NCBI GenBank assembly: GCA_904063045.1
Contig: CAJFCJ010000023.1
Span: forward strand, 310,001-374,000
Direction of reading: 5' to 3'
DNA length: 64,000 bases
Source: Dimorphilus gyrociliatus
Taxonomy: Eukaryota; Animalia; Annelida
A program made the translations under genes and the position numbers. Shown one piece after another: positions 5,466 to 54,748 of the stretch (positions are counted from its first letter, which is position 1; each line of letters begins with the position of its first letter). Below the pieces are notes generated by a model, which was not told the origin of the DNA, did not search any database, and was given only the letters and a program-made list of their open reading frames with translations.

Positions 5466-6600
5466 TTCGTTTTGCCTGAGAGTCACGCTACAACTGCGAA
5501 AGGGAGCTCGCCTTGTTTCGTCGAGTCTTTCCCGGTGTTTCTTGACAAAACTTCTGCAAGATTAAAAATACGATTAGTACGGAAGAGAGGAAAGGAAAAC
5601 ATTTACGAAAAAAAAAAGAGTAGCTTTTTAATGTTTCTATTAATGAAAATATTTTTCTGCGGAGATAGTCAATAAAGTAGAAATAACAAGAATTAAATCT
5701 CGTTTTCTCTACTTGCCAGTCTTTCTACATTTTATTTCGTTTATTCGCCCCCCACCCCTCTCCTCTATAGTCTCCTTCGTCCTTTCCCCCCCTCTCTCTA
5801 TCCATTAAATACTCTTAAATTTTTGTCAATTTTCATCATTGAACGCGTTCGAAATTTTTGAACAGTTGTCAATAAAAAGGCAATTAGTCACAGCTTATAA
5901 TTTGCTATAATAAGTTAATTGATCAAGGGCTCATAGATGAGTTGAAAAAAACGCTAAAAGGTTTTTATGCCTTTTTTCATTCTCCTCTATTTTTTCCTTC
6001 GTACTCTCTTTTACTATTAATTTCTTCTTTATGAAATTCAAACACAACTGTAAATCTACTACATCTCCCTTTACTCTCAAAACAAAAAATATTTTCAATC
6101 GTTCATCAAAAATGCTATTCAAGTTTAGCTTGAACATTTCAAAACGTAATCTCGTTAATTTTATTAGCCAAAGAGTGAAAACTAAATGAAAAAAATAGAG
6201 ACAGAGAGCGGGAGATAGAAAAAGTAAATATGCAAACAATATCTGGGAGAGAGAGGAATATTTCAAGGTGTTGAATACATAAGCAAATAGACTTCGTGTT
6301 GGCGAATAAGTGTAAGGGTATAGGCATTTGCGGTGAGGGTATGATAGGAGGAGGGGGATGAGGGGAGGGGGGCGTGTCTGAGGGAGTGGAAAGAATAATA
6401 CGGAAAGGGGGGAAGGGGGAACATGGATGAATAGAAATGCGAAGGGAAATATTAAGTTTACAGAACAGATAAAAAGAAAGAAAAGGGATAACTAACCTGA
6501 TTCTCAATGCGAAAGCAGCAATAGAAAATCCTCCCAAGACTATCGAACAACTAACAATAACGGTGATCTGAGTTCGGTTTAGACTAGCGCCTGTGTATAA

Positions 6601-6650
6601 ATATGGCGGATTTATTAATTAAACCAATTTTCGTCGCCGTGGTCGGAAGT
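6601..6650. promoter_or_regulatory. Candidate promoter upstream of the LRR gene
   Basis: YY1-like ATGGCGG (6603-6609), CCAAT (6624-6628) and ETS CGGAAGT (6644-6650) within 50 bp of locally CpG-richer sequence. Motif match only. Confidence 0.35.
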
Positions 6651-9630: not shown

Positions 9631-10096
9631 CTGATAATCATGGACGAATGAAATTTTTTACGCTTCTAATCACTTTTGTTTACTTTGCCTAGTCTATTTC
9701 TTTTTTGTTAGTTTTCTGTTTTATTACTCTCTATCCATCTATCTATATATATCTATCTATCATTCTGTTCCCTCCTTCTCTTTCTCCTCTCTCCTCCCCT
9801 CCTCGTCATTTACATTTGACATAATCTGTTTTATACGAAAGAAATAATAGTATGTAAAAAATTTAGCTTTAATCTACCACCTTCTACACCCCCTTCCACT
9901 ATGTCCTTGGAGCTTTGAATAATTGATTGTCTAAAGTACAGTAGATTGTCGACTTTTTTTGTTTGCATTAGAAGTATAAAAATGGAAAAGAGACGAATAA
10001 AGAAATTGAATTTTAAATTTAAATAGGAGCGTCTAATAAACGAAATATACGAAAATATGAATATATAAATAGTAAATATTGAATATCCAGGATATA

Positions 10097-17400: not shown

Positions 17401-17981
17401 TATATAATTTTATAGCTTCTATTTTATACAGTATTTATTCAGATTATAATATAAATAAATACTATAAAACAATTAAGTCATCTTTACTTTTATGTCTTCT
17501 TCCTTCTTTCCTGTTTTCTGTTTCTTCCGTTAAAAATAATAAAGAGAAAATTTCAAGGATTCTGTCCAGAAATACAGAATTGGTACACTGGGTGCAAGTG
17601 ACGGATTAGCGACGGGAGGAAGGAGGGAGGGCCACATGAGGAAGATAATAGGATTAAATCAAACATTTTAATAAGTATATTTCGCAAAGGTAACGAGGAA
17701 AAGGAACAAAAGAGTAACGGTGGAGAAGGGGCGAGGCCGAAAATTGGGATAGAGAGGAGGAAGAGGAGAGGGGTAATGTAACAATCATATGAGGAAAGAA
17801 AAGCGAATTTCAACATATCAAGCATATATATGGATAAGGATTAGACTATTAATAAGAAATGTTGTTATAGTAACAATGATAGTATGAATGAGACGAAGAA
17901 TAAGAACATTAAAGGCGGAGGTTAATTAATTAGAATAGGCAAAGCTTGCGAAAAATAAAACAGATTTGATTGTTATTTTGT

Positions 17982-19340
17982 CTATAGAGCTGTATCAACA
18001 ACCGTGCTCCAGGTGTAGCTGTATTTATTACCGGAAGCTTTTTTAACTGTCAGAATTTTCATTTTGACGTTGGAACTTCCACTAAGACTTTCACTCCTAT
18101 TTGAATGGCAAGAATCAATACATTTTGAGAGGCTTCTCCGAAAACTCGAATTAACTGACACATAGAGTAGAAATGTACAACTAAAATTGATAGTCTGAAG
18201 TAAATTCAATAATAAGGAGAGCGTTTGAGACACTTGAAGATTCGAAATACCTGAGTCTATACAAAAATGAAAAATTTCTGATGGAGAAACTAAAAATATA
18301 TACATAACTACGAGGAAGATTAGAGTAAGATTTAAAGCATTTTTCTTTTCCTCTCCATTTCTTCCATTTCTGGAGGGCGCCGTGTGTACTCGTCTAAAAA
18401 TTTCGCTTTTCCTTATTGCTCTTATTAATTTCATATTGAAGAAAATCAGCAAGGACACAGGCAAAAAATAGCCTATAATAGCCCAGATGATTGTGCAAGC
18501 GAAGAGAATTTTTGAGTTTTCTTCCATGTTATGACATACGACTATAGGCAATAAAAGCATACTCCATATAATCGGTATAAGAACAACAGTAATTGACACT
18601 TTACGTCTTGTCACCCAATACGGTGATCTGATCCCGAAAAGAAGTTTTTTTTAAAGTATCAACGGATAAAGCATTACTTTTAATTATCTATTAATTTTCC
18701 CCCTTCTTTCTCCTCCCACAGGGTATCTTACACGTTTTAAAATTGTTTCCTACTTCTTTCATCCATCTTTCCCTCTACTAGATCATCATTCAAAAGAACT
18801 ATCGATGTTTTCGATTTCTAATCTTTGAGTTTGAGTGCTAAAAAGTTAATATTTAATTTAAACTAAACTTTATTCTCTCTTTGCCAATTTGCATTAGCTT
18901 ACCTAAATTCCTATTTATATTTAATAAAGTTAAGTCAGTCTAGGCATTAGCCATGTAAATACTATCCGTTCATACTTTAGAGGATGGCAAATTGCCAGAT
19001 ATCTCATGAATGATATAAGAAATGTATACCAAGTCGACGTCTTTATCCAAACTTCTAAATAGAAAGTTTGATATGTCGATAGTGCTAGTGAAAAATCTTG
19101 TAGATAAAACATTGGCAGAGTACCAATCGAAAACATTATATCACTAATAGCCAGGGCCGACATACCGAAAATCGAGCACCTTTCGCTGTAGCGATGCTGT
19201 TTTGAATCTAGTCTCATAATTCGAAGATTAACCAAGTTTCCAATGATTCCAAAAACTCCCAAAGAAGGTATTATAATATTTTTTAACAAGTTGTTAATTT
19301 CATCATATCTTGTATCGGAAAAAGGCGACGTTTTATTCAT
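17982..19340 (-). CDS. Rhodopsin-class GPCR, FMRFamide/sex-peptide/myosuppressin-receptor-like orphan (336 aa)
   Basis: Exons 18976-19340 and 17982-18627, with a 348-nt intron (aa|gtatga...atcag|a) giving CHPLK-SPYW. Seven hydrophobic segments; TM1 GIIGN, TM2 LAISD, TM3 STWYTFLISFMRYLAICHP, TM5 YFLP, TM7 NFSCTFLLY..NSSFR. Confidence 0.9.
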
Positions 19341-34038: not shown

Positions 34039-37000
34039 CTAATGGTTACTTTTGTCCAAGTGTTGACGAATTTGCGTACTATTCAATGTTATAAATGTAC
34101 ATTTTAAACAATGAAAATGAATACATTTACCGCTATATGTACATTTGATTATTTCTTTTACGTGTTCGTCGCATGGATCTCCTGCTTTAACTTTTACGAA
34201 ACCCGCGTCTTGAAATCCATCAACTGCTTTATGAATATTTCTATGAGCAACAACTTTACCTCTGTCCGTACAACTAAAATTGCAACGTATACAATGATAA
34301 TGAGCTTGAGATATGTTACAATCATCGTCTGGACAGCTTTGATGAGATCGTATGAGCTTAAAGTCGGAGCCAATAACTTCATCAATTTTCTTGTGCCTGA
34401 GCAAGTGTTGTTCCCCCTTTCCCTTGTCGGTGAACGAGTAAAGGCAATCGGGTTTTGAACAGTGATAATGCGATCCCGAGAGACGATAGCTGCATTTCTC
34501 AACACTGCAGTCGTCCGAGAATTTAAATTTAATAAAACCGCCTTCGGATACTTCTTGATCCTTTTCTACTTTTAAATTTGACCTTTCGGCTAATTTTTCT
34601 ATAAGGGGGTTTTGACTAGGAGGCAACTCTAACTTAGGTCTTTTAGAGGCAATAGATAAATCCAAAGCCTCTTCGCTAATCTCTTCTTTAATGAACTTCA
34701 AAGTCTTATTTTCGTTATGGCTGGTGTTGTTGTTGTTATTATTATTGTTGCTACTGTTGGTGTTGTGATTGTTATAGCTATTATTATTGTTATTATTATT
34801 ACTACTATTCGCCTTTCTCTTAGTAGCAATGCCCACTTTAGCAGCTGCATCATTACTATTACTAAAATTATTAACATGGCTGTTGTTGTTGTAAGCGTTC
34901 TTATCGTTGTTGTTTGTATGATAATTGTTATTGTTATTGTTTTTAACCATAGTTGTTTGTGTATTATCGTTGATTGGCACGTTGTGTTTATCAACCACAT
35001 GAACTTTTAATTTCTCTTCTTCACTATACGTCTGAGAACAGTATGAACAATGAAAGTGTAGTTTTCTCTTCATTTTACAAAATGGTTTACCGCAACCTCT
35101 ATCGCTTGTATATTGCATAGAAACTTTTAAAGATTCCCAAGAATGCTTAGCTGGTGTTTCACTGGCCAATTTATTATCTTTATCGACGTTAATAACAGCC
35201 GATTGCAATTGTTCGCAAATCACAGCTTTCTTAGCCTCTATTGCCTCGTGAATTTCATGCTTTTGACTATGATGACTCATTGTAGCCGGTCTAATAAAAC
35301 TATAATCGCACTTTGATCTGGTACAATGAAAGTGCTTATTGTTCTTATTATTGGGGCAATGGGCTCTTCGACAATCAACTGATCTATCAAAATACTCGAA
35401 TCCTTCTTGAATAATGACCTGACCGTGGAAAGTCTTTGCATGTAAATCTAAAACGTCAAATCTATCGACAGCCGTAAAGCATCTCTCTCTGACGCAATGG
35501 TAATGTTCTATATTGTGATAGGGACATTTATAGTCGGGACACGATGATCCCCCTTTCACGAATTTCTCAAAGCCAGATCGAATCCAAGGAGCCACACCAG
35601 GATTTCTAGCGTCATTCAGCCACTGAAGATCGGATTTGGTGGGAACTCTGGGAACTTGGGGTATTTCGCTCTTTGGATATTTTGGGGGTCTACCCCTTCT
35701 ACGGGAATTGGAAGATTCTTTTAGTGTATTCCTACGGCCTGAACGAGATGAAGAAGCATCGTGCATCCTATAATGATCCAATCGGGCAAAAACATCGCCG
35801 GCTGACTTGACTATTTCATTACACCGATTCTAAATTAATACAAGTACATTAGTAGGGAAAGGAAAAATAGGATGAGGAAAAAAAGGTCTCTTACGTGTTG
35901 ACAATGATAATGCTCCTCGTTAACTTGACAGTCTTCAAAAGAACAAGGAGAACCAGGAAGAATATGTTGAAAAATCATACTAGTAATAACATCTTGATTT
36001 TCATGCAGCCTAGCATGTTCCCTAACGCCATCTTTACTTCTAAAAATTTGACCACAAGAAGGAGTTAAACAATGATAATGGTCTTTATATAAATATTCGC
36101 ATCTTGATGTACATTTATCATTTGCCGTATATCTTGCTAAATACTTTTTCCAATTTTCATTCTTCTCCTTCTTTTCATTTATAGAGGGTATTGTCTTTAT
36201 ATTAGGAATAACTGCTTTAATTGATAAATCTGAGTCGCCTTTGCTGTCTTTTAACGTATCAATTGGCAAGGTTAGCGAATCATTTAAACCGGCATTGGAA
36301 GAGATAAGCTTTTTCGATATTTTTGTCATTTGTTCTCCCGATATTCCCTTAATCCCGGCTGTATTATTTGGATGCTGTTGTTGTTGAAAATGGCTTGGGC
36401 TAATGCTATTGAGATTGGGAATTTGAACAGGAAGCGTTAAGTTTGCTAAGAGGTTTGGTTTTTTATCGCTATTATCGATATTGAGCATAGGAAATAGTCC
36501 CATTTGAAGGGTTGAAAGGAGAGATTGAGATGGTTGATGAGCTGGAGGCTGTAGTGGTGGTGGTGAAGTAGTTTCATTATTCTGTTTGGACGAAGGATTA
36601 TTGGTAGATTGTTCTTCTTCGTCAGTTTTTTCTTCATTTCGTTCGTGTTTACGTTTGTGAGAGTATAGCTGGCCAGTCGAGTGAAGAATGTAATCGCAAC
36701 CCGGACGGATACAATGAATGTGGTTTATTACTTTTGAATATTTACACTCGGAGAATCCACAATTTTCGTACTTCATAAATTTCTTGAATCCATCTCTCGA
36801 AAGAATTTCATCCTTTTGATGGTAAACCTTATGCTTTTCTGTAGTTTGTAAAGATGACGACGATGTCGATGGTGATAATGGTGGGGTAAAAAAATTATAA
36901 TTAATTAATTAACAAATCAACCAATCAATTAATGAACTAATTAACAAAATCTAACTCAATTAAAATAAATCAATTATATGGAATGGTAATTTAGGAAGTT

Positions 37001-40000
37001 CTATTAAAAGTCTCCTAATAGATATAAACGTAAGAGTATATATACATTATATATGTATATATTTGTACATTACGACTGCAATATGCAGTATATACAGTAT
37101 ATACTGAATATTGTTGGGAAACTTAGAAAAAGATACAGTTAAGTTTATTCGCTATAGCTTTGTTTTTATTTCAACATCTCTCTCTACTCATCTACCTATC
37201 TTACTACCTCATCATCTCTTACCTCTCTCCTGTCTTTCTCTTAATCTCTTTTTCTCTAGGTTAGGATTACATATTATACAAGCGGAAATTTGTATTTCCC
37301 TTTTTTCTTTCTATATTATACATTTTTCATTATTGACCACATACGAATAGTAATTATTCTCTCGCATACTAAATAATAGCACGTTATAAGATTTTTCATA
37401 GCACTTACCCATATCGGCCTTGTTTTTAAATGTGAACCCGCAGCCTTCTCGGAGACAATGGAAATGAGTTGTTCTATGACCTTTAAAGGCGCAAGAGGGC
37501 ATTCCACAATCTTCTGTAGCACGAAATCTTTGAAAGCCCTCTTGTAGAATAGCCGAATCTTTTCTATGAAAGTTTGAATGCATCTGAACGTCACTTGTCG
37601 AAATGTAAACTTTAGTACAAGAGGGATGAAGGCAATGATAGTGAGTTTGTCGACCTTTATGAATGCAAGGTTGCAATTTTTCAAATCGTCTTGTACAATC
37701 GTCGACTGGAGAATAACGAAGGAAACCAAAGTTGAGAATTTCATCTCTCTTCTTATGCCATTTAAAATGACGTATCATTTCTTCCTTCTTCAAAAATATT
37801 CGATCAGCAGAGTCGCCACTCTCGATACCATCGTTAAATTCATTAGCATCCTCTTCTTTGCAGGAATTACAATGAAAATGTTCTTTAAGTGGAATACACT
37901 CGGTACGACCGCATAATTTTCCCGATTCGTATCTTGTAACGTATCGACTATAATCTGGCATTAAACTATTTTTCTGTTCAATTTCCTCAGGCCTATAAAT
38001 TGTCTTGAAATAATTATCAAGATCTCTCGAACTGTTAGGAGACTTGGATCGTTCAGAACCGGAATTTTCCGTATCGTCGTCCTTTTGCCATTCTACAAAA
38101 GGAGGAAAGAGAGAAACGATTAGGATGATATCTAGTTTAAGGATCAATAGGAATAAAGACTGTTAGAATAAAAGGAAACAAGTAAACAATTCAAGGCCAT
38201 TGAACACCGTTTCATGACAACGTTTTGAACATTTGAATAAATTAAATTGAAAAAGTACGCAGATAAATACATAGCTATAAGATATTTTATATATATATAT
38301 ATATATATACTGTACATAAACTGTATGTATGTTTAAGTACAAGTCCAATTGCATATATTAATATATGCCAAGATGAAAATTTTTATTAGATAATATCTAC
38401 TAAACATTTTCCCGTTGCCAAGACGAACAACTGAATATTCAGGCTATTGAACAATCGACAAATAAATGTTTGAGAACATAGCAACCATTTAATTCCTTCA
38501 CTCCCGACTTTTTTAATATTTCATAAGCACAAATGATCAATAAATGAAATCTTAAAAATGTATTATATATAGATACGCCACAGTTTTTTACTCTTTCGGA
38601 TATATTTCAATAGAATATCATATCATTTTGTTTATATTTATTATTGAAGAAATATCTTCTTATTATACCATAAGCAGATCTATACGGTGCATATATATTT
38701 ATCAATGTTCCTCATAGAGACGTATTCCTTTTTTTTGTTAATTTTTTTTCCTTCTTTCACATAATTAATTAACGGTTAACCGTACTTAAAGAGAGACGGT
38801 TCATCCGTTTTTATTATTAATACTGAAATGGCTAAACTCTTGTTCTAACTAGAAAAGAAAAAAGGAAAAGAGAAAACAAAAAAAAAAGAGAAAAAAGAAT
38901 ACTTCTCTGTGCTCGAATATTGAAATATGCATGCACCGCATACACAGCTATAGTATACAAAATCATAGTAGAAATAATCACCCAAAGAAGCAAGACAATA
39001 GGAGAGCAACTCGTTCAAGAAGAGTCTGATGATATACTAATTAGATGAAAGCTTTCAAAAATTATTTTTATACATATATAATAGTTAAATCTAATAGAAT
39101 TAGAGAGTTATATGGTGTATTTGTAGAGCTTTGTCGGAATAAAACTAGCTCTTTTCCAGCCGACTAAATAACCGCCTTGTGTACATGGTAACCATGGAAA
39201 CAGATTGGCGGCCGTTTGTCGTTAGCCGTTCATTGATCCATTCATAATCGCTTATTACTATATTTCCGCGCCGTGCTTTTATAGGTAGAATCAATAAAAA
39301 ATTTCCAAATTGTAACTCGAATCAAAAATGGTAAACAGCTGCATAAAGATTAAAACTCGACTATAAACATTTCTCTTTGAAACGAATATATACCAGTTAA
39401 ATAAAATAATACGCAACTTTGCTCGACTATTTGATATACAGCGTATATTCAGTATATATATATATTGGTGAGTGTGCACGCATTCATGCATGTGTAAGAT
39501 ATTGCACATAAACATTTCGTGCACTGTATACTAAATCCTGTTGGAGATTTATTACACGTTCAATTTATACTGAAAGAAAAAAGAGAGAGAACTGCGTCGC
39601 TCTATGCATTTCCCCTATTTTTTAATATATCAACCTGATAGGTAGGCGAAGGGAGTGAAAAATTATTATATTTTCGTATTTATATTCCCTATGCATCTTA
39701 TATCCGTATACTGTATACTATTTATCATATATTTTCCACTTTTTAAAGCATAATACTCTATTAATTCGAAATACAATAGACAATAGAATAATAGTACTGC
39801 ATTCAGCTTACGTAAGTGTTTATCATTTTTTTCCCCTATAAAGAAGAGCAATATGTACAGTGCATTGTCTAACGTTTATACACTCTTTTTATAATATCAT
39901 ACCAATGTGTAGTCAAATAATTTTAAGTATATTTATAAATATTATTTACAAAGATGGCTGGGAATTAGTAGCCTATCTAATACACTATATTGCAGCTGCT

Positions 40001-40752
40001 AGTAGCATCCTCTGATAGATACATACAGAAACGGCATTTCGTAATTTTGAAAATCCTACCAAATTGTATCTCGCATGCAGCTGTCACAATGACAAGTTGT
40101 TTCCATGGCAACTGATTGTTCACGTGGGATATCGAGGCAACCTTTTATAAATATTGGCAAAATCGATCGAAACGAACTTGGGAGAGTTTCCCTCTGAGCT
40201 ATTACGTAATACATGAAAAGCGTTTGGCGCTTTAAATTTCTTATTAATTAGTCAGAATTAATAAATGAATGAATGAATAAGTTACGTATAAGTTAGATAG
40301 GGAGAAAAGAAAGGAAGAGAGGATAGGAATGATGAAAGCAGGAGAAAGTGTATTTTCATATATAAATATATATGTCAGTCTGTGTGCATGTGTGTGTGTG
40401 TGTGATTGAGTGATTTAGAGATTATATGAGAGAATGAACGAACGAACGAATGAACTAAATTATTTTCACTAAATAGATTCATGCTGCAAAGAGTAAAACA
40501 AAAAAAGTAAAATAATAATTTTTCAAAGCATTGTTCAGGTTATAAATAAATAAAAAAAGTATGATTTTACTGAGAGAAAAAAGATTAGAATTTAATAAAA
40601 ATTATCTGCAGTAAAGGAGCCATTATTATTAGAATGTTGGTAAACAAATAGAATAAGTGATAAACAAAGATATTTTAAAAAAGAAAACAAAAAAGGGAAT
40701 TTTGTCATTTTTACATTTATTCCGTATATATAAGAGATAATGAGTAAATTAG

Positions 40753-40807
<55 letters not shown>

Positions 40808-41981
40808 GTATGTGTGCGTGTGTGTCAGCGTATTTCATACGATTTTAACAAGCTAATACTGTTTTTTTGTTAGACAAAGTATAGAGAGTGAATATGAAAT
40901 ATAAAAACCGTTCCAAATATAGATACTATATACACTATATATATATATTTATATCTATTATCTTTAATCAGATGCTAACTTGTTCCTACTTATTTATTCA
41001 TAGAGAATGAAATATGTACAGAGCAACATTGAATTCGAAATTCAAGTGTTACATAAACAGTACAGATCAATAGATGGCTTTCCATTATTTTTATACAATA
41101 TACCAACAAATCAATTAATTATCGAATTTCAATTAAAAGACCTAGACCATAAAATGTATGATATTATACAATGTATACAGTATACAGTATATACAGTATA
41201 TATATATATATCATGGAACTTTTCTAATGAAATAGCTATATAGTAAGACATTTTCTAAACCCCTATAAACAATAAACTTCGATTTTTTTTTCTTGTACAA
41301 TAATAATAATAATATAATGAATTTTCAATGTAATTTGCCGTATTTCATTTGTTTCTTAAAAACAGAACTGAATAGTTTAAATGTTCCCTTTTTTTACGCG
41401 AAATTTTAATTTTAAAGCTAATTTATATTTCCGTATAAAAATATAATTCACCTACCTTGGTCATCTATTTCCATTTTCATAATTGGCTGCTTAATTGTCT
41501 TTTGATCTTCTATCCTATTTAAATTCATAGCTGCTGCTGCTGAACTAGACGAGTCTACAGCAAATCCATACTTTTTAAGGAATTCAGAAACAGTAAACTC
41601 GGCCATTTCCTTAAAATCTTGTCCAGCTGCTCCAAAACGTAGTTCATTATCGTTTTCGTCCTGAGATGAAGCACCTTCAGACATCTTTTCACCTGACGAA
41701 ACTTCAAGGTCATTTATGGAATCCTTGACAGAATTTACTCCGAATTCACTTAAACTCTCCGAATCGTCATAATCAGTATTTTCATTATGTTGGAATCGAT
41801 AGTTATCATCCTGAGAAGGTATTAAACACCTAGGAACAGTAGTTTTTCTTCTATTCTTTTTCTTGTCGGATTTTTCCTGTTTAGTAGGCGCTTCGTTAAA
41901 ATTATAATCCCTTTCAACTTCCTTCTTAACAGCGTTCTTTTGCAATTTGGCACAAATAGCATCTAGACCGTTTTTTGACAT
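34039..41981 (-). CDS. CASZ1: Castor / CASZ1 zinc-finger transcription factor (about 1314 aa, 4 coding exons)
   Basis: Exons 41456-41981, 37409-38092, 35895-36838 and 34039-35829; total 3945 nt with phases 1, 1, 0. N-terminal GLDAICAKL (human CASZ1 has LNAICAKL). Hallmark segments [39 protein letters not shown]...[12 protein letters not shown] and [24 protein letters not shown]. Confidence 0.96.
39188..39201 (+). promoter_or_regulatory. RFX X-box in castor intron
   Basis: GTAACCATGGAAAC is a perfect match to GTHNYYATRRNAAC, followed by ATTGG (inverted CCAAT). Confidence 0.6.
40099..40112 (+). promoter_or_regulatory. RFX X-box in castor intron
   Basis: GTTTCCATGGCAAC is a perfect match; a CACGTG E-box lies just downstream. 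Confidence 0.6.
40755..40794. repeat. (TG)20 microsatellite
   Basis: Direct reading. Confidence 0.95.
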
Positions 41982-43687
41982 ATTTTGCAATGTTTCTTTT
42001 TGTCAAATTCTTTCTCTCAGTCCGTGTTTTTTTTTTTTAAATCAAACAAACAAAACAAAAAAAGTTGTAAATGTAACACTTTATTCAATGTTTTTCTTAT
42101 ATCCAATGTTTATAATTTGAAAGTTGTACGTGGTTAATGTTTTAACAGCCGAATTATCCAAAATATTACGTCATTTTCTGTAAAAACAAAAAACAAAAAT
42201 AAAATGATACAAAGTTAAAAAGAATTCATTCGTTTTTAAAATTCAAGAGCGAATAGGTAATTTTCTTCTTTTTTCTTTACTGTAATAACAATAGTCTTAG
42301 GCTTATATCTTTCTAAATGAATAAGATGATCGATTTCCGATTAATTTAGAAATCTTTTTTATAAAAGAACGCTAAAAATATTATCAAGACATTATAGAGC
42401 GTACAATAAGAATAAATATATTGTATGGTCAAGTTTCCCTTAAGTATATAACTTTAACTTAAAAAAGATTATATTAGTATGCATTACAAAGGGAAGAATC
42501 ATAATGAAATAACTCATTTAATAGTTAATAAAACCTTTAAGACTTTTAATTTTGGTTAATTTTTTACCTTTACATTTTTTATAATTGTTTGATAAAAGCC
42601 TATAGTTTTTTACATAATAAATGTTAATAAAAGAAACTAATTCGTTTTTTATTATGAATTATAACCAAATAATAAATTTTAAACATTTTAGTATTAAGGC
42701 GCTAGCCGCCCAAAAATATCAGGTGGAAAAATAAGTATTAACAAAAAACCCATACAATAGGGGTCCACAGCATGATGAAAGGGGAATAGCGCAAACATTC
42801 GTTTATAACGCTTAGCCTCATTCGATTCAAGCGTTCCCGCCTTACTTGCCCTGTTCCCCTCCCCAATCCCTCTTAAACATTACCACCCTCCTTTTCGCAT
42901 TCATACGCGTTCAAAGACAAACACATGTACATATACATGTTCAAATATATATGCCCTATATATATATATATATGTTGTATTAGTATATTTCCTAGTGTAT
43001 ATATAATTATACTCCCTCTCTATCTATCTCTTTGCCTCTTTTCTTTCTCTCTCTCTCTCACCCACCCACCTACCTTGTCTATCTTTGTCCCTGTCCTTTT
43101 TCCTATGCCAATAATTTGTTTAAGGCCAACTAATTAATAAATTATCAACGAAATTCTTACATTTCCACATGTACTTTATCTTTATATGACATTTGGATAA
43201 ATAATTATCTTACCTTTTGAGGTGCATCAACCGATTCAAAACAACATTAGAAAATGGCTTAGAGAACGAACAACGAAAAAAATATTAATTTAGTCAGCCT
43301 ATGCGTTAATATTGATGAAATTTAGTAGCTTTAGCAAAAATTTGCTATCAGAGTTTTTTTTCCCGAAACAACGTTATTATCGTGTTTATTACGTAGGCGG
43401 TTCGATACTGTTAATTTTACCAATTAAAGATAATCTTTATAAAATTTATTAAATGAATAAACAATAACGACAATAACAAATTACAAAAACATTCAAAAGA
43501 TGAAATCAAATTGGAAAAAAGGTAGGGAAAGAGGGCGGAAAAGGGTGGCGCACAGGTTGTGTTTTTTCTTTCGCATTTATTTTTATCTCTTCTAATTTAA
43601 TACATATTGTAAATAAATATTAATACATATACTGTACATATATAAACTTCATTCTCTTACGTACCAATATTCTATATATTCATACAG

Positions 43688-43719
<32 letters not shown>

Positions 43720-43847
43720 CTATATATTACATGAACTGATCCACTTGGCATTGAAAAATAAAGTAAGATTCCTATACTCTTACGCTTTCTTACAGTTGGT
43801 CATCAGTTTAATGATGGAGAGCTAAAAACTTACAGCAAAACGCCTAC

Positions 43848-44300
43848 CTTTTTTTGATAATCCATGTGCAAGAGTGTACAGGCGGCGGCTCTCTCGGTCC
43901 TGGTATGTATTGTGTGAAAAAAGCCTGTTTGAATTGCACGGTCGCTATGGAAACGTCGCTATGGTCACGTGACGTATTTGGAATGTACGGTTTTTGACAG
44001 CACCAACGATAAGAGAGTTAAAAAACTCTAGCGATAACGATGGAGGTCATAGTCCAAATTGGTATATGCAAAAATGACATATACACGCAAAACTTTTTTT
44101 TTGGCAATACGCCAATAAGTTATATACTCTAATGAGCAACCAAGTTAGGCTTAAGAAAAAACGAGAAATAGCTTACCGAAATACTGAAAAATTGAACAGA
44201 TTGAACAGCGGCTTGGCAACGGGCATAAAAGCTAGCGAAATTCAATAAAAACCTTCCCGAACAAAGTCTGGCCTCCTTTACAACTTGTATATTACCATAG
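43848..44300 (-). other. Candidate non-coding 5'UTR exons of castor
   Basis: Minus-strand donor cg|gtaagc at 44177/44176, exon about 43848-43899 (ccag acceptor, aag|gtaggc donor) and a strong acceptor ttttacag near 42178 upstream of the ATG. No expression evidence. Confidence 0.35.
43941..43973 (+). promoter_or_regulatory. Tandem X-boxes overlapping a GTCACGTGAC palindromic E-box
   Basis: GTCGCTATGGAAAC (perfect), then GTCGCTATGGTCAC (one mismatch), then GTCACGTGAC at 43964-43973. Confidence 0.6.
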
Positions 44301-46251
44301 CAACCAACAAGCTTGAACTAGATTGAATGCTAGAATAAACTATTGAACAATTGTTCAAGAAATGTTTTTAGACCGCTATTGACCATACGGTCAGCTCGAG
44401 TGTGTATATATTTGTTTTATATGAACATTTTATATATCATACCGTTTCTACCAATATCAAAACCATATGATTTTCATAAATAAAATCGGAAAAACTTCTC
44501 CAACTTTGTTGAAAGCATAAATAAAAAAGACAAAAAAAAAGAGACGGATAAACGTTCCACCGACAGTATTGGCTCATTTCATTCTACATCTATTATCCTA
44601 CTCAAGCTTCTATAAACATATACAGACATAGACACAGGCACACAAACTTACATTTTGCATACTCTCCCTTTCTATCTATCCATCCGCCTATCTATCTATC
44701 TGTTGTTCTATCTATCTATCTTCTTAAACTCGTATTTCTTTTCAATCTATTCTAAAATAGATGCAAAGTAAAAAAGACAAGATGATAAAACTGTTCAATA
44801 TAAAAAATAGAACTGGTCACCTTCACTGACAAACTCTCACCCAGAACTTTCCGTTTCAAAAAGGTTCGTGAAATGTCATGGCGTCACTTTTTAATAATTA
44901 ACGAACTACACTCTCCCCACCTCTCTCTCTCTCATTCTATTCTGATTCATAACAGTAAAAACTTCTATTGTTATCGGAAAAAGGAATTTAATTTTTTTCC
45001 TTTAGTTTCTCTTTACTTGAAATATATTTAGTATCGTTTCAAATGTCGATTAGAAAATCGCCCCTTATGGCACTTGTCATCTCTCAGCCTATAAATGCGA
45101 ATGTTTAAACGCGCCTTTTTTTTCTCTGAACAAAGACTGAACAATTCAAGTAGGTTAACGCCATGAAGATAAATTACAAAAAGATAATAACAAAGAAAAA
45201 AGTATATATAAAAGCAATACTCTTTTAGAAAAAGTAAAAAAAAATACAATGAAATTGAATTTCTTGAAAAAAAAAACAAAAAATTTAAGAGGATGTATTA
45301 TTAATGTCTAATCTTATCTTATCACTTTATTAATACCAATACGAAGAGAAAAAACAATAGAAATAAAAGTACTTTTTTTCTGGTTTTTACTAGAATATAT
45401 TTTTATCATTTATATAAAAATTTATAATAATAATAATAATAAAGTTTATACTTATTTAAATATCGTTAAGAGCACTAAAATATTCCGAAATAAAGCACTT
45501 TAAAATATTTAAAGCAAAAGATGTAATACATAAAACCATTTACCAGGAATAGAATATAAACCAAATATTCAATTCTCTCTTTTTCACTATAGATCTATAG
45601 CAATAAAACTTAAAATTTTCCACTTATTTTTTTTATATAAATAATCTACCTGTTTTACTATTTTTAAAATACCGATGAGAATAGATTTTTGTCTAATTGT
45701 ATACAATTTATCTTTTTTTACAGATTAAAACTATTGTAGTCTTTATAAATGTTAATTATAGATAAAAAATATATATTCAATTATTAAAAATAGATTATTT
45801 TTTCACAGTTACAAGATTTTTATTTTAAAAAAATAAAAGTAATATTCAAGTTATAAATTGGTTGATCTTTGCTTTATTTATATAAACGATAGCAAGCTTG
45901 ACTGAAAATAATAGGAAATAGGACTTTTATCCAATTGATTACTGTTTTAAGCGTATTTGTCGAATAAAAGAATTTTTTAAGAATCAAGTCTATTCTTTCG
46001 AGTTCAAAAAAGTAAGCAAAATGACCTAATTCGAAGACCTAGACAACGAGCAAGAACATGTAGAGTTTTACTCGTTAACTTGTAAATGTATACATATATA
46101 CAGTATGTGTATGTACGCGTATGCGTGTGTATGAATACACTTTTCTATTATTTAATTCGAGTGGCTATGTGTTTAAATCAAATTATATTAGCTAAATGAA
46201 TAGAAAGTATTACGAAACAAGTTGATTGACTTAATTACGAATTATATAAAA

Positions 46252-47008: not shown

Positions 47009-47687
47009 TTATATGTTATTGTATAGCATATCGTAATGGTTGGCTGTAGATCTGTCTAAAGGACTAGTTAAGTTCATTTTCCCTTTCATAGCACCCCTGA
47101 AAACTGTTTCAACGACATCAATCACTTCTTGTTTACTTGATAAACTTCCTATTAACTTTGTCTGATCCGGTGTGCTGTAAAAAAAAACAAAATAAAAAGA
47201 AAGCATGGAAAAAAACAAAGAAAACGTTGTTTTCAAAGTTTTATTACTTAAAAAGCTTACAAACCCCCAATCAATTCGTATATGTTGAGCATTAAAAAAA
47301 AAGATTGTAGCAGGAATGTAGCTAATATCAAAGTAATTATTGTATACTTCTGACGATTTAACGTCAATCTGATAAATTCTTGCCATGTTTGTCAACAAAG
47401 GGGCGGCTTTCGAAAGCTGTTAGATAAGGAAAAAAGAATATAAAAAATAAGAAGGAGAATAATGATATAAATATATAAACATGTTTTACTAGTGTGGTAT
47501 TTAAACACTTTCAACATTATACGCTGGGTTAAAAGAAAAATATTATTTATACCACGTGGTCTAATTTCATACATTCTCCGTCGTCTTCTTTACCAAATCT
47601 TAATACTAAAACCAAATCTTTTGTATTCATAATAGCTTCATCTATTTCACTTTTGCTCTTTAAACTTGGTAATTCGCTGAATGCCAT
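47009..47687 (-). CDS. TXNL4B: Thioredoxin-like protein 4B (Dim1-like/Dim2, spliceosome-associated), 150 aa
   Basis: Exons 47553-47687, 47265-47416 and 47009-47174. MAFSELPSLKSKSEIDEAI...LVLRFG...[30 protein letters not shown]...RGAMKGK...YDMLYNNI. The YFDISYIP and C-terminal YD.LY..I signatures match TXNL4B rather than TXNL4A. Confidence 0.95.
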
Positions 47688-49122: not shown

Positions 49123-52100
49123 ATGGAGCGGGGAGGCAAAAAGGAGGTAGCGGCTTGCTCTGCTTTTGTAGCCCAATTATTTAGGAAAGAATATTGCCGC
49201 AATTGTTTTCGTAGCGAGCTTGAGCACTGTAACGCGGCCACTAACAATGTTTCAGATTTAAGAGAGACGCACCTAGACGATTCCAGTCTACTATCGCAGT
49301 CAGCAGATAGTCTCGAGGCTAAACCAGAATGTGAACAAGTTCTAAAAGACAAAGATGAAGAGAAGGTTAATAGGAGAAGAATTGAGAGAGCCGAAGCGAT
49401 GGCCGAAGGAGTTAGGATGCTTGCTGATAGTTTAAAAGAAAAGTGCGAGAATTTGGAAAAAGAGAAAATAGAAATGAAAAAATGCCATGAAACAGAACTC
49501 TCTACTGTCAGGCAACAGGTATCTTTTTTTTCTCTCTCTCTCTCTCTCTGTCTAACTGTGTTTCTGGGTTGAGTTAGGTGCATTAGGTTAGTGGGTGAAA
49601 AAAAAAAGTTTTTTTATAGAAAACCAAGATGAAAGGAATGATGATCGCTATCATTTATTTTTTTTTAATAAGAAGAAGATGAACTTAAAAAACTGAAGTA
49701 AAACTTGAAGAAGTAGAAGACATTATAAAAAGTAGTTCGCGTACCTTTCAGCTTAATAACAGATTTATTTTGTCTGGTAAAAATGAATGCTGCATACTAA
49801 ATAAACCCTTATCACCTGCCAAAGATCTCCTAATCCTTTTAACTCTATTCTATGTCATCTTTTTCTTCTTTGTTATTATCATCGTCACAGTTACTATCGG
49901 CTATAGCTATAATATATTTTTCTATATGTAAAACACAACACTAAAACGATATACTAGCACACCTGCTGTTGTCGGATTTTTTGTTTTCTTGACATACTGA
50001 ATATATACAGAAAAATATATATAAAATTCTAATATGATCGACCCTATTATCCTAAAAAGGTTTTAGGAATAGTTCTCATTTAAAAGTCTATTGTCGACAA
50101 GATTTTAATGAACTTTGTCCGTTAGGTTTACACTTTTATATAGCTAAAGCTTTTAATGAAAGTATATCCATATAACATATTTGAAACGGTTCACCTTTCG
50201 TTTCACAGATAGAGAGGCTGGGTGAACAGAATAGCAAACTCGCAGAAAGATTGTCAATGCCAGAAAGTGAAAGGTTTCCAGACGAACAAATGAAAGCGAT
50301 TATTGATGAGAATCATGAACTGCGAAGAGAACTACGGGAATTACAATTAGAGATGGATGAACTTCACGACCAATTTCGGGACGATGATGATGAAACTGTT
50401 ATGGAAATTAGGGCATTAAGAAGAGAATTAGATGCAGCTGCTAAGCATTCAAGAGTCTTACAATTTAAACTTCGAAAAGCCGAACGAAAGGTCTATTTCT
50501 CTTTTATAAATTTATAATTACAAAATATATTATTACAATATAGAAAACAATAGGCTATTTAAATTTTATGAATATTTTATCTTAATTGAAGAATAGTTTA
50601 CAGTATTTGTTGTGAAGGTGAAATATGATGATGATGAACTGCAAATGAAAAACAGGTAGAACAACTGGAAAGTGAAAAGGCCACAGAGAGCTATTCTCTG
50701 AGTTCAGATGAAAGAAGTGAAAGATTAAAGGAAGAATTAACAGTTGCTAAAGAAGTTTCTGTTCGATTACACGATGAATTAGAATGCGTTGAGGAGAAAC
50801 GAATGAGAAGTGAACAAATCATCTCTGAATTAAAATTCGAATTAGAAGAATCTGGAGCGCAAAGAGACGCCCTTCACCAAGAATTGGAAAGAGTTGAAAG
50901 AGAGTTGGATTACGTGCGAAGTCTTGTACAAGGAGATACAAACGTTAGTAATTTAAGACGAGAACTGACAGCTAGTCAAGAAAGAGAGCAAGATTTAAGA
51001 GAGCAATTTTCCTACGTACAAGAAGAAGTAAGAACTCTAAAAGAGAAGCTGGCAGAAGCTGAAAGAGAAATTCAGTCATTAACAAATCAATTACAAGGTT
51101 GTACAAATTTTTAATTAAATACCGTAAATATTATTGATAAGAATTAAATAATGAAAATTAAACCTCCCCTCTTTTCCCCAAATTCCATTCCTCTCCCCTT
51201 TCTCACTCTATAATGATTAGGTTTGGGATCGGATATAAATAAATCAAATAAACCGGAACCATCGGATTTACAAGAAATGCTAACAGAGCTAAAATTGGAA
51301 AATGCCAACCTAAAAACTCAAATAGGACGGTTACAGGAAGATAGAGATGAAATTACAAACCACCGTCGGCCCCTATTATTAAAGAGTCAGTCCCTGGACG
51401 AAGTATCAACGGGTAAGGGAGAAAAAGTGGACCAAATTCAAGTTTTAAGAAACGTAATAGGTGAAAGAGAAGACGAGATAAATCGTTTAGAGAAAGAATT
51501 GAATGACTTTAGACAAGATCTAGAGCATGTTAGAGATAATTTTGCGGCCCGAGAAATTGAGATGAAACGAGATGTTGAAAACATGACAAATAAATGCGCT
51601 CTTCTTAGCAACTTATTACAATTAGCCAATGAACGAACTGGTAGTCTAGAAGGCCAAACTAACGGTTTAGACTCTTCTATGAACAATCAACTTTTGCAGA
51701 GGATTGAGTGTCTGGAGCGTTTATTAGCACACGAGAGATTGAAAAAGAAGTATGTTGACGCTGAAAAGAGTTCGGCAATAGATGGCGCTGATTCACGAGG
51801 TGTTGAACACGATGTATTGAAGAAAGAGGTAAATTATATATAATAAATAAATAAAAAGATAATTAAAGAAAACAAATAAGATAATTTTATCTGAATTTTC
51901 ATACAATATATTTTTCTTTGAATTCTTCAAATATAGTTAAATATCGCTCAAAAGGAGTTGAAACAATCTAGAGACGAAATATATATTTTAAAAGGACGAT
52001 TGGATCAAATTTCTGCAAAGCAAACAGAGCCTGACAATAAGCGATCGGCACCATCAACTTGGAGATGGGAAAAGGCTGAATTAGAACGTCAGCTTGTTGA

Positions 52101-54748
52101 ACAAAAGAAAAAAGGTGAACAATTAAACAGACATCTTCAAAGACAACTTGTCAAATGGCAATCGGCCGGAGGCGATTCGAATCAATCAACACAAAATCGT
52201 CTCGCGGTTCATGCTCAAGCTCTAAAGGAAGAATTAGGAGAATTACAGCAAAAATTCGATAATGAATGCCAACTAAGACTGAAATTGGAACACGATAACA
52301 AAGCCAAAGAACAAAAGATGGAAACGGATATTGAAATATTGAGAAAGGATCTGGAAGAAATGAATAGACAAAACGTCGAATTGCATTCGACCGTTAATGA
52401 TAAGGATTGTGTTCTTATTGAAAAGCAAAAATTAGTAGACGAAAAGGAAAAAGGACTAGAAGAATTATGGCAACGCTACAGTCAAGTTCTTGAACAGTTG
52501 GATCTTGTTAAAGCCGAATTAAATGTTCAAAAGAAATTATCTCAACAGCAAGAACTTCAAAGAGTCGACTTAAAAGAGCAATTAGCAGAGATAACATCAC
52601 AAAACCAGAGTCTAATTTCGAAACTTGAGGAAAAGGAGGATGATATACAGAGTAAAGATATCTCTATAAAGGATTTATATAAAAACGTTGCTGAACTAGA
52701 ACAAAAGATAAGAGAACTGGAAAAGGTTATAGATGATCTTCAAAGGAGTCTAAAATGTGAAAAGGATAAAACTACAGCAACCGAAGGTGAGCTACAAAAG
52801 CAAAAGAATTTGGACGCTTTTCGGGTAAGTTTTCTCGGTTTCCTTTATCAAAAAAAAAGATTAAGGTTTACAGAGGTCAATTTAACTATTGAAAATAAAG
52901 TAATGCTAAACACTAACAAAATAATAATGATAACAACAGATTGCCAGAGATTCGAAAATGATGCAATTAACTAGTGAGTTAATAGAAGCTAGAAGAAAAT
53001 TGAATTGTGAAAGAAAGGAACGATTCGAATTTGAGTGCCAGACTCGTCGAGAGATGGAAACTCAAAAAAAGAAAACTATTGAATTAGAAGACAAATTTAA
53101 AAAATTACAAAGCGAAAAGTCGACAGGAAAGTTTAATTATACGTCAGTTCTGAAATCTCATAAGAACGATACCGAAAAGAAGGCTAAGGAGAGGATAGAT
53201 CAACTAGAAAAAGAATTAGCAGTTATTAAGGAAGAACACGAAAAAGAGAGGAAAGACCAATTTAGACTGCAAATGGAAGCGTTGAAATACGAAAGGCAAA
53301 TAACAGATGATAGCAGGAAACAATTGGCGGCTTTCGTTAAGGTTTGTTTATTCCTTTATTTAATTTATATTTATACTCCTCCTCCTTGATAATTGATATA
53401 TTTACATATCTTTATATGATTATTTATTTTCACTAATTAATTACTTAATTATTTAATTACTTAATTAATAATTTACTTATTCAATTGTTTATAGGCATTA
53501 ACAATATCGTTAGTTTTGTTTGAGCACTTTACTCTTTCTTTTGTTGAGCATTCTGAGTTCTCTGTTATCATTCACTCCTCTCTCTCTTTTTTACTTACTT
53601 GCTCGTTTACTCACTTATTTACTTATACATTGACACACTTAGTCGTTCGCTCTTCCTTTCTTTAAAATCAAAAATGTAACATAAATAAAACAGAATTTCG
53701 GAAAAGCGGAATCGACTGAATTTATATCATCGACTCCGGAAAGACCCACGAAGCAACACGTTTCGTTTTCGTCATTAAAATCGCTTCGTCAACATTCTGT
53801 TGTTGAAAAAGGGTCAGCTAAGATTTACGACAATAATATTCGTAAAGTATACGTTTCGGCCGAAAATATTTCAAAGAGACCGCCACCACCCGAACCGCAA
53901 CCTCCCAGGGAAACTCGATCCAGAGATCGACAGCCGAGAAGATTAAACACGGCCGCTCCAGACCTAGGTCAAAACGTTCCTTTCTCGCAGAGAAGACCTC
54001 CATTGACAAGGTAAGAAAAGCCTCTTTTTGTTAAACAGCTAGTTCAATGAAGCTTGAACGGTCCACTTTATCTTTTTTACCATGGTCCTCATTAGATCAT
54101 CTGTTCATCAAACGGGAACGAGATCGGCTATATCGTCGAGGGATCCTTCGCCGTGTTCCCACCTGCCCAGACCGCCGCCAAATATGATCATTACTCCTTC
54201 TCAAACTCCTCAGAGAGCTCCCAGTATAGAGCATATCGGACAGCCATTGACTGATAATGACATGCGTGACCTATACGCCAGATTAAGAAAAGTTAGCATG
54301 CGAAGGAGGAATGACAGCGAAAGCACCAACGACGAAGTATTCGAAGAGCCTAAACGACTTGTAAATCCACTTCCACCACCCTCGGCAGAAACTAAGAAGA
54401 GAGCAATGAGAGCATCTAGCGAATCTAGGTTACCTTTCGTTCAAGTAAAAAGTACGTCGACAACAGGAAAAGAGGACGGAATTGTGGTAAGTAATTGATT
54501 AATTGATTTATGGTGTTCAATCACGTTCTCGTTATTTTTCTTCTTTTATTGTCATCGTGAGAAAATAAGCAAAGAAAGAATATAATATATTGAAATATTT
54601 AGTAAAATATGTTTGTTTTGTTTATTTCTTATGACAGAGAAGAAGTTTGCAAGCTCTACGAAGAAAATTCAGCGTAGGAGATAAATGACGAAAAATATTT
54701 TAAACAAATCAAATTTTCTACAGAATATACTTTTATTTTTTCTAGAAT

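Follow-up and report, generated by a model that had tools for sequence, protein, structure and literature searches.

The X-box, a 14-bp palindrome, is the textbook site for RFX dimers, and the X-boxes of ciliary genes are usually single and promoter-proximal, being located within approximately 250 bp to a few hundred bp of the transcription start site (TSS) or the ATG. RFX factors also have neural roles beyond cilia. Among the closest described systems for the locus reported here is the DAF-19/dRFX ciliary regulon of C. elegans and Drosophila, with which it shares the same 14-bp imperfect palindrome (GTHNYYATRRNAAC or GYTRYY N1-3 RRHRAC), the presence of encoded RFX factors, and the over-representation of the motif. 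In that regulon, a single X-box is found at a structural ciliary gene, whereas the present locus, castor of the annelid Dimorphilus, has five sites over 5 kb, upstream and in intron 1, and its putative target encodes a zinc-finger transcription factor. X-box function has been predicted from conservation at orthologous loci (PMC2375033), and the same predictor is applied here to castor.

The locus also resembles the homotypic clusters of transcription factor sites in developmental enhancers, in which a developmental regulator has, within a few kb, several sites for a single factor, in introns as well as upstream, and in which the cluster is kept between distant species without alignable flanks. 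A further likeness is with the modules of C. elegans cilia genes that combine an X-box with a forkhead site (PMC10393296), where the X-box likewise lies near a second defined motif, an arrangement that by analogy suggests cooperative input. The castor composites differ from these modules in that the partner is CACGTG or GTCACGTGAC, a site of the bHLH or bHLH-ZIP type, and not a forkhead site. Castor/CASZ1 is a key temporal-identity factor in neural progenitors, and we know of no described case of an RFX cluster at this gene, in which respect the locus departs from the known homotypic clusters. A full-text literature search found no paper that brings CASZ1, RFX, and the X-box together, and the 15 best-ranked of the 59 papers mentioning CASZ1 and RFX had no such link in their titles or abstracts. 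The Drosophila screen for X-boxes (PMC2375033) does not name castor in its main text, and the Dimorphilus genome paper, supplements included, makes no mention of RFX.

Results

The window, which is the whole stretch of 64 kb that was analysed, includes the features listed in Table 1. The gene around the X-box cluster is, as judged from its exons, castor/CASZ1 on the minus strand. The exons were searched individually, by reference, and in this exon-by-exon search they matched zf-C2H2_CASZ1; the relatives of exon 2 all carried PF26743 (zf-C2H2_CASZ1), the best named relative being that of Capitella, and exon 2 was 92% identical to that of a close relative. Exon 1 was 52% identical to exon 1 of the close relative (P0001), and this N-terminal exon is also homologous to Capitella teleta L067:6101-6640. 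The gene thus combines CASZ1-type C2H2 zinc-finger units with a conserved N-terminal exon. The non-coding block that is conserved upstream of the ATG contains no X-box and is possibly a 5'UTR exon or promoter.

Table 1. Positions of castor, its X-boxes, and adjoining features in the window
Feature	Position	Strand	Remarks
Castor exons 2-4	34039..38092	-	CASZ1-type zinc fingers
Open frames of castor exons 2-4	37311-38147, 35835-36776, 34039-35781	-	Exon 2 start near 38092
Castor intron 1	38093-41455	-	Between coding exons 1 and 2
X-box 1, GTAACCATGGAAAC	39188..39201	+	Intron 1, ~1.1 kb upstream of exon 2; perfect match
X-box 2, GTTGCCATGGAAAC (minus strand)	40099..40112	.	Intron 1; consensus match on both strands
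CACGTG E-box	40121..40126	.	9 bp from X-box 2
Castor coding exon 1	41456..41981	-	ATG at 41981; donor CAAG/GTAGGT after 41456
Conserved non-coding block	42740..42837	-	~0.8 kb upstream of ATG; ~78% identity to close relative L005:131-258
X-box 3, GTCGCTATGGAAAC	43941..43954	+	1.96 kb upstream of ATG; first unit of head-to-tail pair; perfect match
X-box 4, GTCGCTATGGTCAC	43955..43968	+	One mismatch; directly abuts X-box 3
Palindrome GTCACGTGAC	43964..43973	.	Overlaps X-box 4
X-box 5, GTTGCTATGGTAAT	44291..44304	-	Last base mismatched; 2.3 kb upstream of ATG
DIM1/TXNL4-like gene, last exon	47012-47398		3' end facing the X-boxes

The original prediction had placed three perfect matches to GTHNYYATRRNAAC and two one-mismatch copies at this gene, two of the five being intronic, and our scan confirmed each site at its position (X-boxes 1 to 3 and X-boxes 4 and 5, respectively) as well as the location of X-boxes 1 and 2 inside intron 1, the other three being found 2.0-2.3 kb upstream of the ATG. 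The sites have the half-sites of an RFX X-box (GTNRCC ... RGYAAC with a spacer of 1-3 nt), X-boxes 4 and 5 being one base off. Two of the three perfect sites, X-boxes 1 and 3, conform to the C. elegans consensus with a weak half-site on one side, the other half-site of X-box 1 being strong. X-box 2 is the best site and agrees as well with the restricted consensus of Drosophila, GYTRYY N1-3 RRHRAC, X-box 4 repeats the first 10 bases of X-box 3, and X-box 5 also fits RTNRCC N1-3 RGYAAC on the plus strand. Repeat copies as a source of the five sites were ruled out, their flanks being unrelated, and no repeat, RNA-gene, or tRNA explanation for the sites was found.

No further sites had been noticed by eye in the window, and this held true when the CYATGG core was required; with the consensus as written, there were extra perfect matches at 17861 and 30902, which are AT-rich variants lacking that core. 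One-mismatch matches to the loose consensus GTHNYYATRRNAAC were near chance in the window (26, compared with 17 ± 5.5), and the loose consensus was not enriched in the genome (1103 strand hits compared with 994 for the reversed control). The strong-core motif GTHNCYATGGNAAC, on the other hand, was over-represented, giving four strand hits in the window with zero mismatches against 0.02 expected and seven with up to one mismatch against 0.69 in shuffles, all of them within 39188-44304, and 190 strand hits in the genome against 34 for the reversed control, which is an enrichment of 5.6 times. The enrichment signal is carried by the shared CYATGG core, to which the original prediction had pointed. 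Approximately 161 strong-core sites were listed genome-wide, and 13 pairs within 5 kb were found among them, compared with 1.65 expected. Castor, with three of the listed sites within 4.8 kb, is one of only two triples within 5 kb in the genome, and a triple anywhere in the genome arose in 0.8% of the trials in which 161 sites were placed randomly (P of approximately 0.008). The strong-core X-box is above background in both the window and the genome, and the cluster is non-random.

CACGTG occurs only four times in the 64 kb, and for two of the four an X-box is no more than 10 bp away. Genome-wide, approximately eight places combine an X-box with CACGTG at a distance of up to 30 bp, and castor accounts for two of them. 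The palindrome GTCACGTGAC, an E-box of the USF/MITF-TFE type, was found at 376 sites genome-wide compared with 12 for the control, an enrichment of 31 times.

The conservation of the X-boxes in related species, which had been proposed as a check, was borne out at the level of the cluster by castor of Capitella teleta, at KB298496.1:25492-37000, where 14 strand hits representing 10 perfect sites were found against 0.13-0.18 expected. Seven of these sites are upstream of exon 1, two are in intron 1, and one is after exon 2, and no X-box is present in the 10 kb downstream. In intron 1, both X-boxes precede a CACGTG by no more than 20-30 bp. The 16-mer comprising X-box 1 and 2 additional nt recurs upstream of Capitella castor (L067:2965), keeping its orientation with respect to the gene. 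The flanks of the Capitella sites are unique except for one 24-bp tandem pair, indicating that the sites are not repeat copies, and no alignment of flanks was obtained between the two annelids, so that the conservation is that of motif and cluster only. The contigs of the close relative (L005 and L008) stop 1.76 kb from the ATG on the upstream side and cover the first 0.55 kb of intron 1, in both cases short of the positions orthologous to the X-boxes; all three of its exon-1 contigs are genomic. Among the other castor loci compared, those of a hemipteran and of a small invertebrate have no X-box, that of a bivalve has one, and that of a limpet has three loose ones, L075, L076, and L077 being too short to count. 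Because these loci have only zero to three sites, the X-box cluster at castor is not pan-bilaterian.

Four loci in the Dimorphilus genome encode the RFX DNA-binding domain (PF02257), one of these domains being divergent, and three of them also encode the BCD dimerisation domain (PF25340). Both the DNA-binding and the dimerisation domains expected of a cognate RFX factor are, thus, encoded. Taken together, the identity of castor, the non-random cluster, the encoded RFX factors, and the Capitella cluster make it a well-founded prediction that castor would be a direct target of RFX, and the original proposal to this effect is supported as such a prediction.

Discussion

We consider that the five sites probably represent a homotypic cluster of RFX X-boxes in the cis-regulatory DNA of castor, through which dimeric RFX factors would set its transcription jointly with a bHLH or bHLH-ZIP factor that binds CACGTG, and we give this reading a probability of roughly 0.6. 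The upstream module, approximately 2 kb from the ATG, consists of the head-to-tail pair of X-boxes fused to the palindromic GTCACGTGAC and of another X-box at a distance of 340 bp, and two more modules are in intron 1, one of which again adjoins CACGTG. The binding of these X-boxes by dimeric RFX factors is the most likely mechanism, and the lineages in which RFX and the CACGTG-binding factor would jointly act on castor may be certain neural ones, possibly sensory. The occupancy of the sites by RFX, whether castor is activated or repressed, the identity of the partner, the cell type, and any tie to cilia are matters of inference. In a bolder and quite tentative form of the proposal, RFX and a CACGTG-binding bHLH factor could directly drive castor through an old link, at least annelid-wide, so that the RFX programme of ciliated or sensory neuron differentiation would be wired into neural temporal patterning, and this might perhaps extend to the expression of Casz1 in the hair cells and multiciliated cells of vertebrates.

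It could also be that the cluster ties castor specifically to the ciliogenic RFX programme, castor being switched on in the making of ciliated sensory neurons, which we regard as unlikely. RFX is established as a conserved ciliogenic regulator (PMC2375033), and some observations are in line with such a role: among 40 strong X-box sites surveyed through their open reading frames, a survey only partly interpretable without annotation, a perfect palindrome lies 160 bp upstream of a gene with a DUF4532 domain, which was taken as CFAP90-like, and another is just upstream of an EF-hand gene that is calcyphosine-like by eye. FOXJ1-GFP+ airway cells of the mouse show a more than 3-fold enrichment of Casz1, although in situ hybridisation revealed airway enrichment only and no ciliated-cell pattern (PMC5936064), and Casz1 rises in nascent hair cells, for which RFX is cited in the same study as essential (PMC8378666). 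The step from RFX to a ciliated sensory-cell programme, as originally proposed, was nevertheless not upheld in this genome. Seven core ciliary genes (two B9D, one MKS1-like, IFT57, two IFT46, and BBS5) have no strong-core X-box nearby, and in six of these seven IFT/BBS/B9 genes a consensus X-box is absent within approximately 2 kb, unlike in the DAF-19/dRFX regulon, the sole exception being IFT57 with a variant in which the spacer is absent; the reading in terms of cilia is weakened because of this. The remaining X-box pairs and clusters are located at or close to the best-scoring RFX gene and four non-ciliary regulators, namely, an elav-like gene, groucho/TLE, a gene with multiple zinc fingers, and a Rhodanese-domain gene (cdc25-like by eye). 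Castor itself is a zinc-finger transcription factor and, on the present evidence, not a component or regulator of cilia, and its five sites are spread over 5 kb with none closer than 1.9 kb to the ATG, in contrast to the single promoter-proximal X-boxes of ciliary genes, although this distance is measured to the ATG and an untranslated first exon beside 43941-43973 is possible.

The sites could be real RFX sites that do not regulate castor, serving instead the DIM1/TXNL4-like neighbour or forming a boundary or silencer element, and this is an improbable account of the locus. The upstream X-boxes are inside the 4.8-kb gap between castor and this DIM1-family gene, and RFX1-type factors are known to be able to repress; against the neighbour as the target, however, two of the sites are within castor intron 1, the cluster surrounds castor exon 1 in Capitella as well, and the DIM1-like gene turns its 3' end to the sites and is read away from them. 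Least probable of all is that the cluster is a chance accident of a scan that took in many types of motif over more than 1300 windows, or the mark of a non-RFX protein recognising CYATGG-containing sequence, for although the loose consensus lacks genome-wide enrichment and the presence of an X-box alone was no predictor of RFX dependence in the work of Laurencon et al. (PMC2375033), the rarity of such triples, the independent enrichment at the Capitella orthologue, the enrichment of the strong-core motif over its control, and the match of the palindrome to the RFX dimer site all stand against it.

The reading as an RFX cluster acting on castor makes this gene a credible new target of RFX, as far as can be judged from the DNA. 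Little is known of the regulators upstream of castor/CASZ1 beyond the neuroblast cascade of the fly, and RFX sites that are clustered, conserved, and paired with E-boxes provide a concrete hypothesis for what may switch castor on or off in spiralians. Testing it would cost little, since ATAC-seq, CAGE, and RNA-seq data have been published for Dimorphilus, as have ATAC-seq and RNA-seq data for Capitella. More generally, it is at or close to neural and developmental regulators that the strong X-boxes of this compact genome cluster, and not at the core intraflagellar-transport genes that were tested, which bears on how far the rule that an X-box denotes a cilia gene reaches beyond nematodes and flies.

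Results

The castor/CASZ1 orthologue is located on the minus strand of the window, and its identity was confirmed by the relatives of its exon 2, all of which carry PF26743 (zf-C2H2_CASZ1), the best named relative being that of Capitella. The position of the last exon of its upstream neighbor, a DIM1-family gene, leaves about 4.8 kb of intergenic DNA 5' of castor. Coiled-coil exons of a long plus-strand gene (49123-54498) were also observed past the DIM1-like gene, and one 338-aa exon of this gene gave no Pfam match.

Coordinates of castor features in the window and in Capitella teleta
Feature	Position	Strand	Remark
Castor coding exon 1	41456-41981	minus	ATG at 41981, donor CAAG|GTAGGT
Castor further exons (open frames)	37311-38147, 35835-36776, 34039-35781	minus	
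Castor intron 1	38093-41455		
Palindrome GTCACGTGAC	43964-43973		overlapped by X-box 43955
DIM1-family gene, last exon	47012-47398	minus	upstream neighbor of castor
Capitella castor (L067), exon 1	~6101-6640		
Capitella castor (L067), zinc-finger exon	from near 10000		

All five X-boxes (predicted RFX binding motifs) of the original prediction were found in place, three as perfect matches starting at 39188, 40099, and 43941 and two with one mismatch at 43955 and 44291, and the first two lie within castor intron 1, as had been proposed. The best site is 40099, at which the consensus is matched on both strands and the Drosophila restricted consensus is matched as well; 43941 and 43955 form a head-to-tail pair with the first ten bases in common, and 44291 lies 340 bp further upstream. 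No repeat, tRNA, or Rfam feature was found at the five sites, and their flanks were mutually unrelated. The impression by eye that no other X-box occurs in the window held for the form with the CYATGG core, which is confined to 39188-44304, but not for the consensus as written, which is also matched perfectly at 17861 and 30902, both AT-rich and without the core. Two minus-strand open frames at 17982-19340 have the look of a rhodopsin-type GPCR; the match at 17861, just 3' of them, is probably due to chance.

Scanning of the assembly (77.9 Mb, 349 contigs, about 32% G+C) with the loose consensus, in which the core is not required, gave 1103 strand hits compared with 994 for the reversed control, and its one-mismatch matches in the window (26 versus 17 expected) were near chance; the loose consensus carries little information. 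The strong-core form, GTHNCYATGGNAAC, gave 190 strand hits genome-wide compared with 34 for the reversed control and, in the window, 4 hits with zero mismatches (0.02 expected) and 7 with up to one mismatch (0.69 expected), all in the same interval. The clustering statistics were computed on the 161 strong-core sites listed genome-wide, among which there were 13 pairs within 5 kb (1.65 expected) and only two triples within that distance, one of them at castor; random placement of the 161 sites produced any triple within 5 kb in 0.8% of trials. By the window counts and these trials, the X-box density at castor is above both the shuffled and the genome-wide expectation, and the cluster is real and non-random.

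The motif CACGTG occurs four times in the 64-kb window, two of the copies (40121 and 43966) being at most 10 bp from X-boxes, and its occurrence within 30 bp of an X-box was found at about eight places genome-wide, two of them at castor. The palindrome GTCACGTGAC occurs at 376 sites genome-wide compared with 12 for the reversed control (a 31-fold excess), is strongly selected in this genome, and appears to be a major motif of its promoters or enhancers. Four copies were observed within about 1 kb at C2:2695946-2696974.

In the Logan contigs of a close relative, castor exon 1 was 52% and exon 2 was 92% identical, and a non-coding block without an X-box (42740-42837) was conserved; these contigs stop short of the positions orthologous to the X-boxes and, hence, have no bearing either way on site conservation. 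The castor locus of Capitella teleta (L067) was found to have ten perfect X-boxes within its initial 11.3 kb, followed by 10 kb without any (14 strand hits versus 0.18 expected); seven precede exon 1, two are intronic (intron 1), and a single one lies past exon 2, so that the split between upstream region and intron 1 is common to the two annelids. The flanks of the Capitella sites are unique except for a 24-bp tandem duplicate containing two sites, CACGTG follows both intron-1 sites within 20-30 bp, and one site is the same as 39188 in its 16-mer and orientation. Because the flanks are unalignable between Capitella and the window, the conservation of X-boxes at castor concerns motif and architecture. 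The castor locus of Lottia has 3 loose X-boxes (0.27 expected) and that of Tegillarca has one, and none was found at those of a hemipteran and one further organism. On the present data, the cluster looks annelid-wide at most.

Discussion

The original prediction tied the cluster specifically to a ciliated sensory-cell program, a possible reading that we consider unlikely and that the tests do not favor. On its side, strong X-boxes are present just upstream of two cilia-type genes, namely, a DUF4532 gene (the site being a perfect palindrome), which we take to be CFAP90-like, and an EF-hand gene that by eye looks calcyphosine-like. However, none of the seven core ciliary genes located (two B9D, MKS1-like, IFT57, two IFT46, and BBS5) has a strong-core X-box nearby or a loose 14-mer within about 2 kb upstream; IFT57 alone has a variant, GTTGCTAGTAAC, about 400 bp upstream, consisting of two half-sites without a spacer. 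Furthermore, other pairs and clusters are at or near regulators. The densest among the sites listed (C2:1246041-1254752; L009 and L010) has five consensus sites in 8.7 kb and GTCACGTGAC at C2:1250691, in a gene-poor stretch upstream of a minus-strand multi-C2H2 zinc-finger gene (L073:7565-9889; first-exon-like frame at L009:1-579), and about 16 kb from it a strong X-box (C2:1270913; L011:6913) immediately precedes the first coding exons of an elav/Hu-like gene (RRM_1 in the exon scanned). Upstream of the exon for a Groucho/TLE N-terminal Q domain there are two strong X-boxes (C20:502721 and 506343; L014), at distances of 1.6 and 5.2 kb. Another site (C29:223271; L018:2271) precedes the ATG of a Rhodanese-domain gene, cdc25-like by eye, by about 45 bp, and a second one, 6 kb away, is upstream of a bHLH exon of ARNT-like appearance. 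Strong X-boxes are therefore not a cilia-only mark in D. gyrociliatus.

In the full-text literature, no paper joining CASZ1, RFX, and X-box was found, and among the 59 papers naming both CASZ1 and RFX, the 15 ranked highest address a regulatory link in no title or abstract. According to the main text of a Drosophila X-box screen, from which castor is absent, it is conservation, and not the bare presence of an X-box, that predicts RFX control (PMC2375033). In the mouse, FOXJ1-GFP+ airway cells show enrichment of Casz1, the in-situ pattern of which is only airway-wide (PMC5936064), and Casz1 is increased in nascent hair cells (PMC8378666), a circumstantial overlap with RFX-dependent cell types.

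Three RFX genes of the D. gyrociliatus genome combine the DNA-binding domain with the BCD dimerisation domain, and one further RFX gene is divergent. Upstream of the best-scoring one (L001, with both domains), about 5 kb from its DNA-binding-domain exon, there is a strong X-box (C16:818816; L019:4816), which could represent autoregulation. Taken together, the non-random cluster, the likeness to Capitella, and the presence of RFX genes suggest, with a probability of about 0.6, that castor would be controlled directly by RFX, probably together with a partner that binds CACGTG, which is a good prediction and a conserved one.
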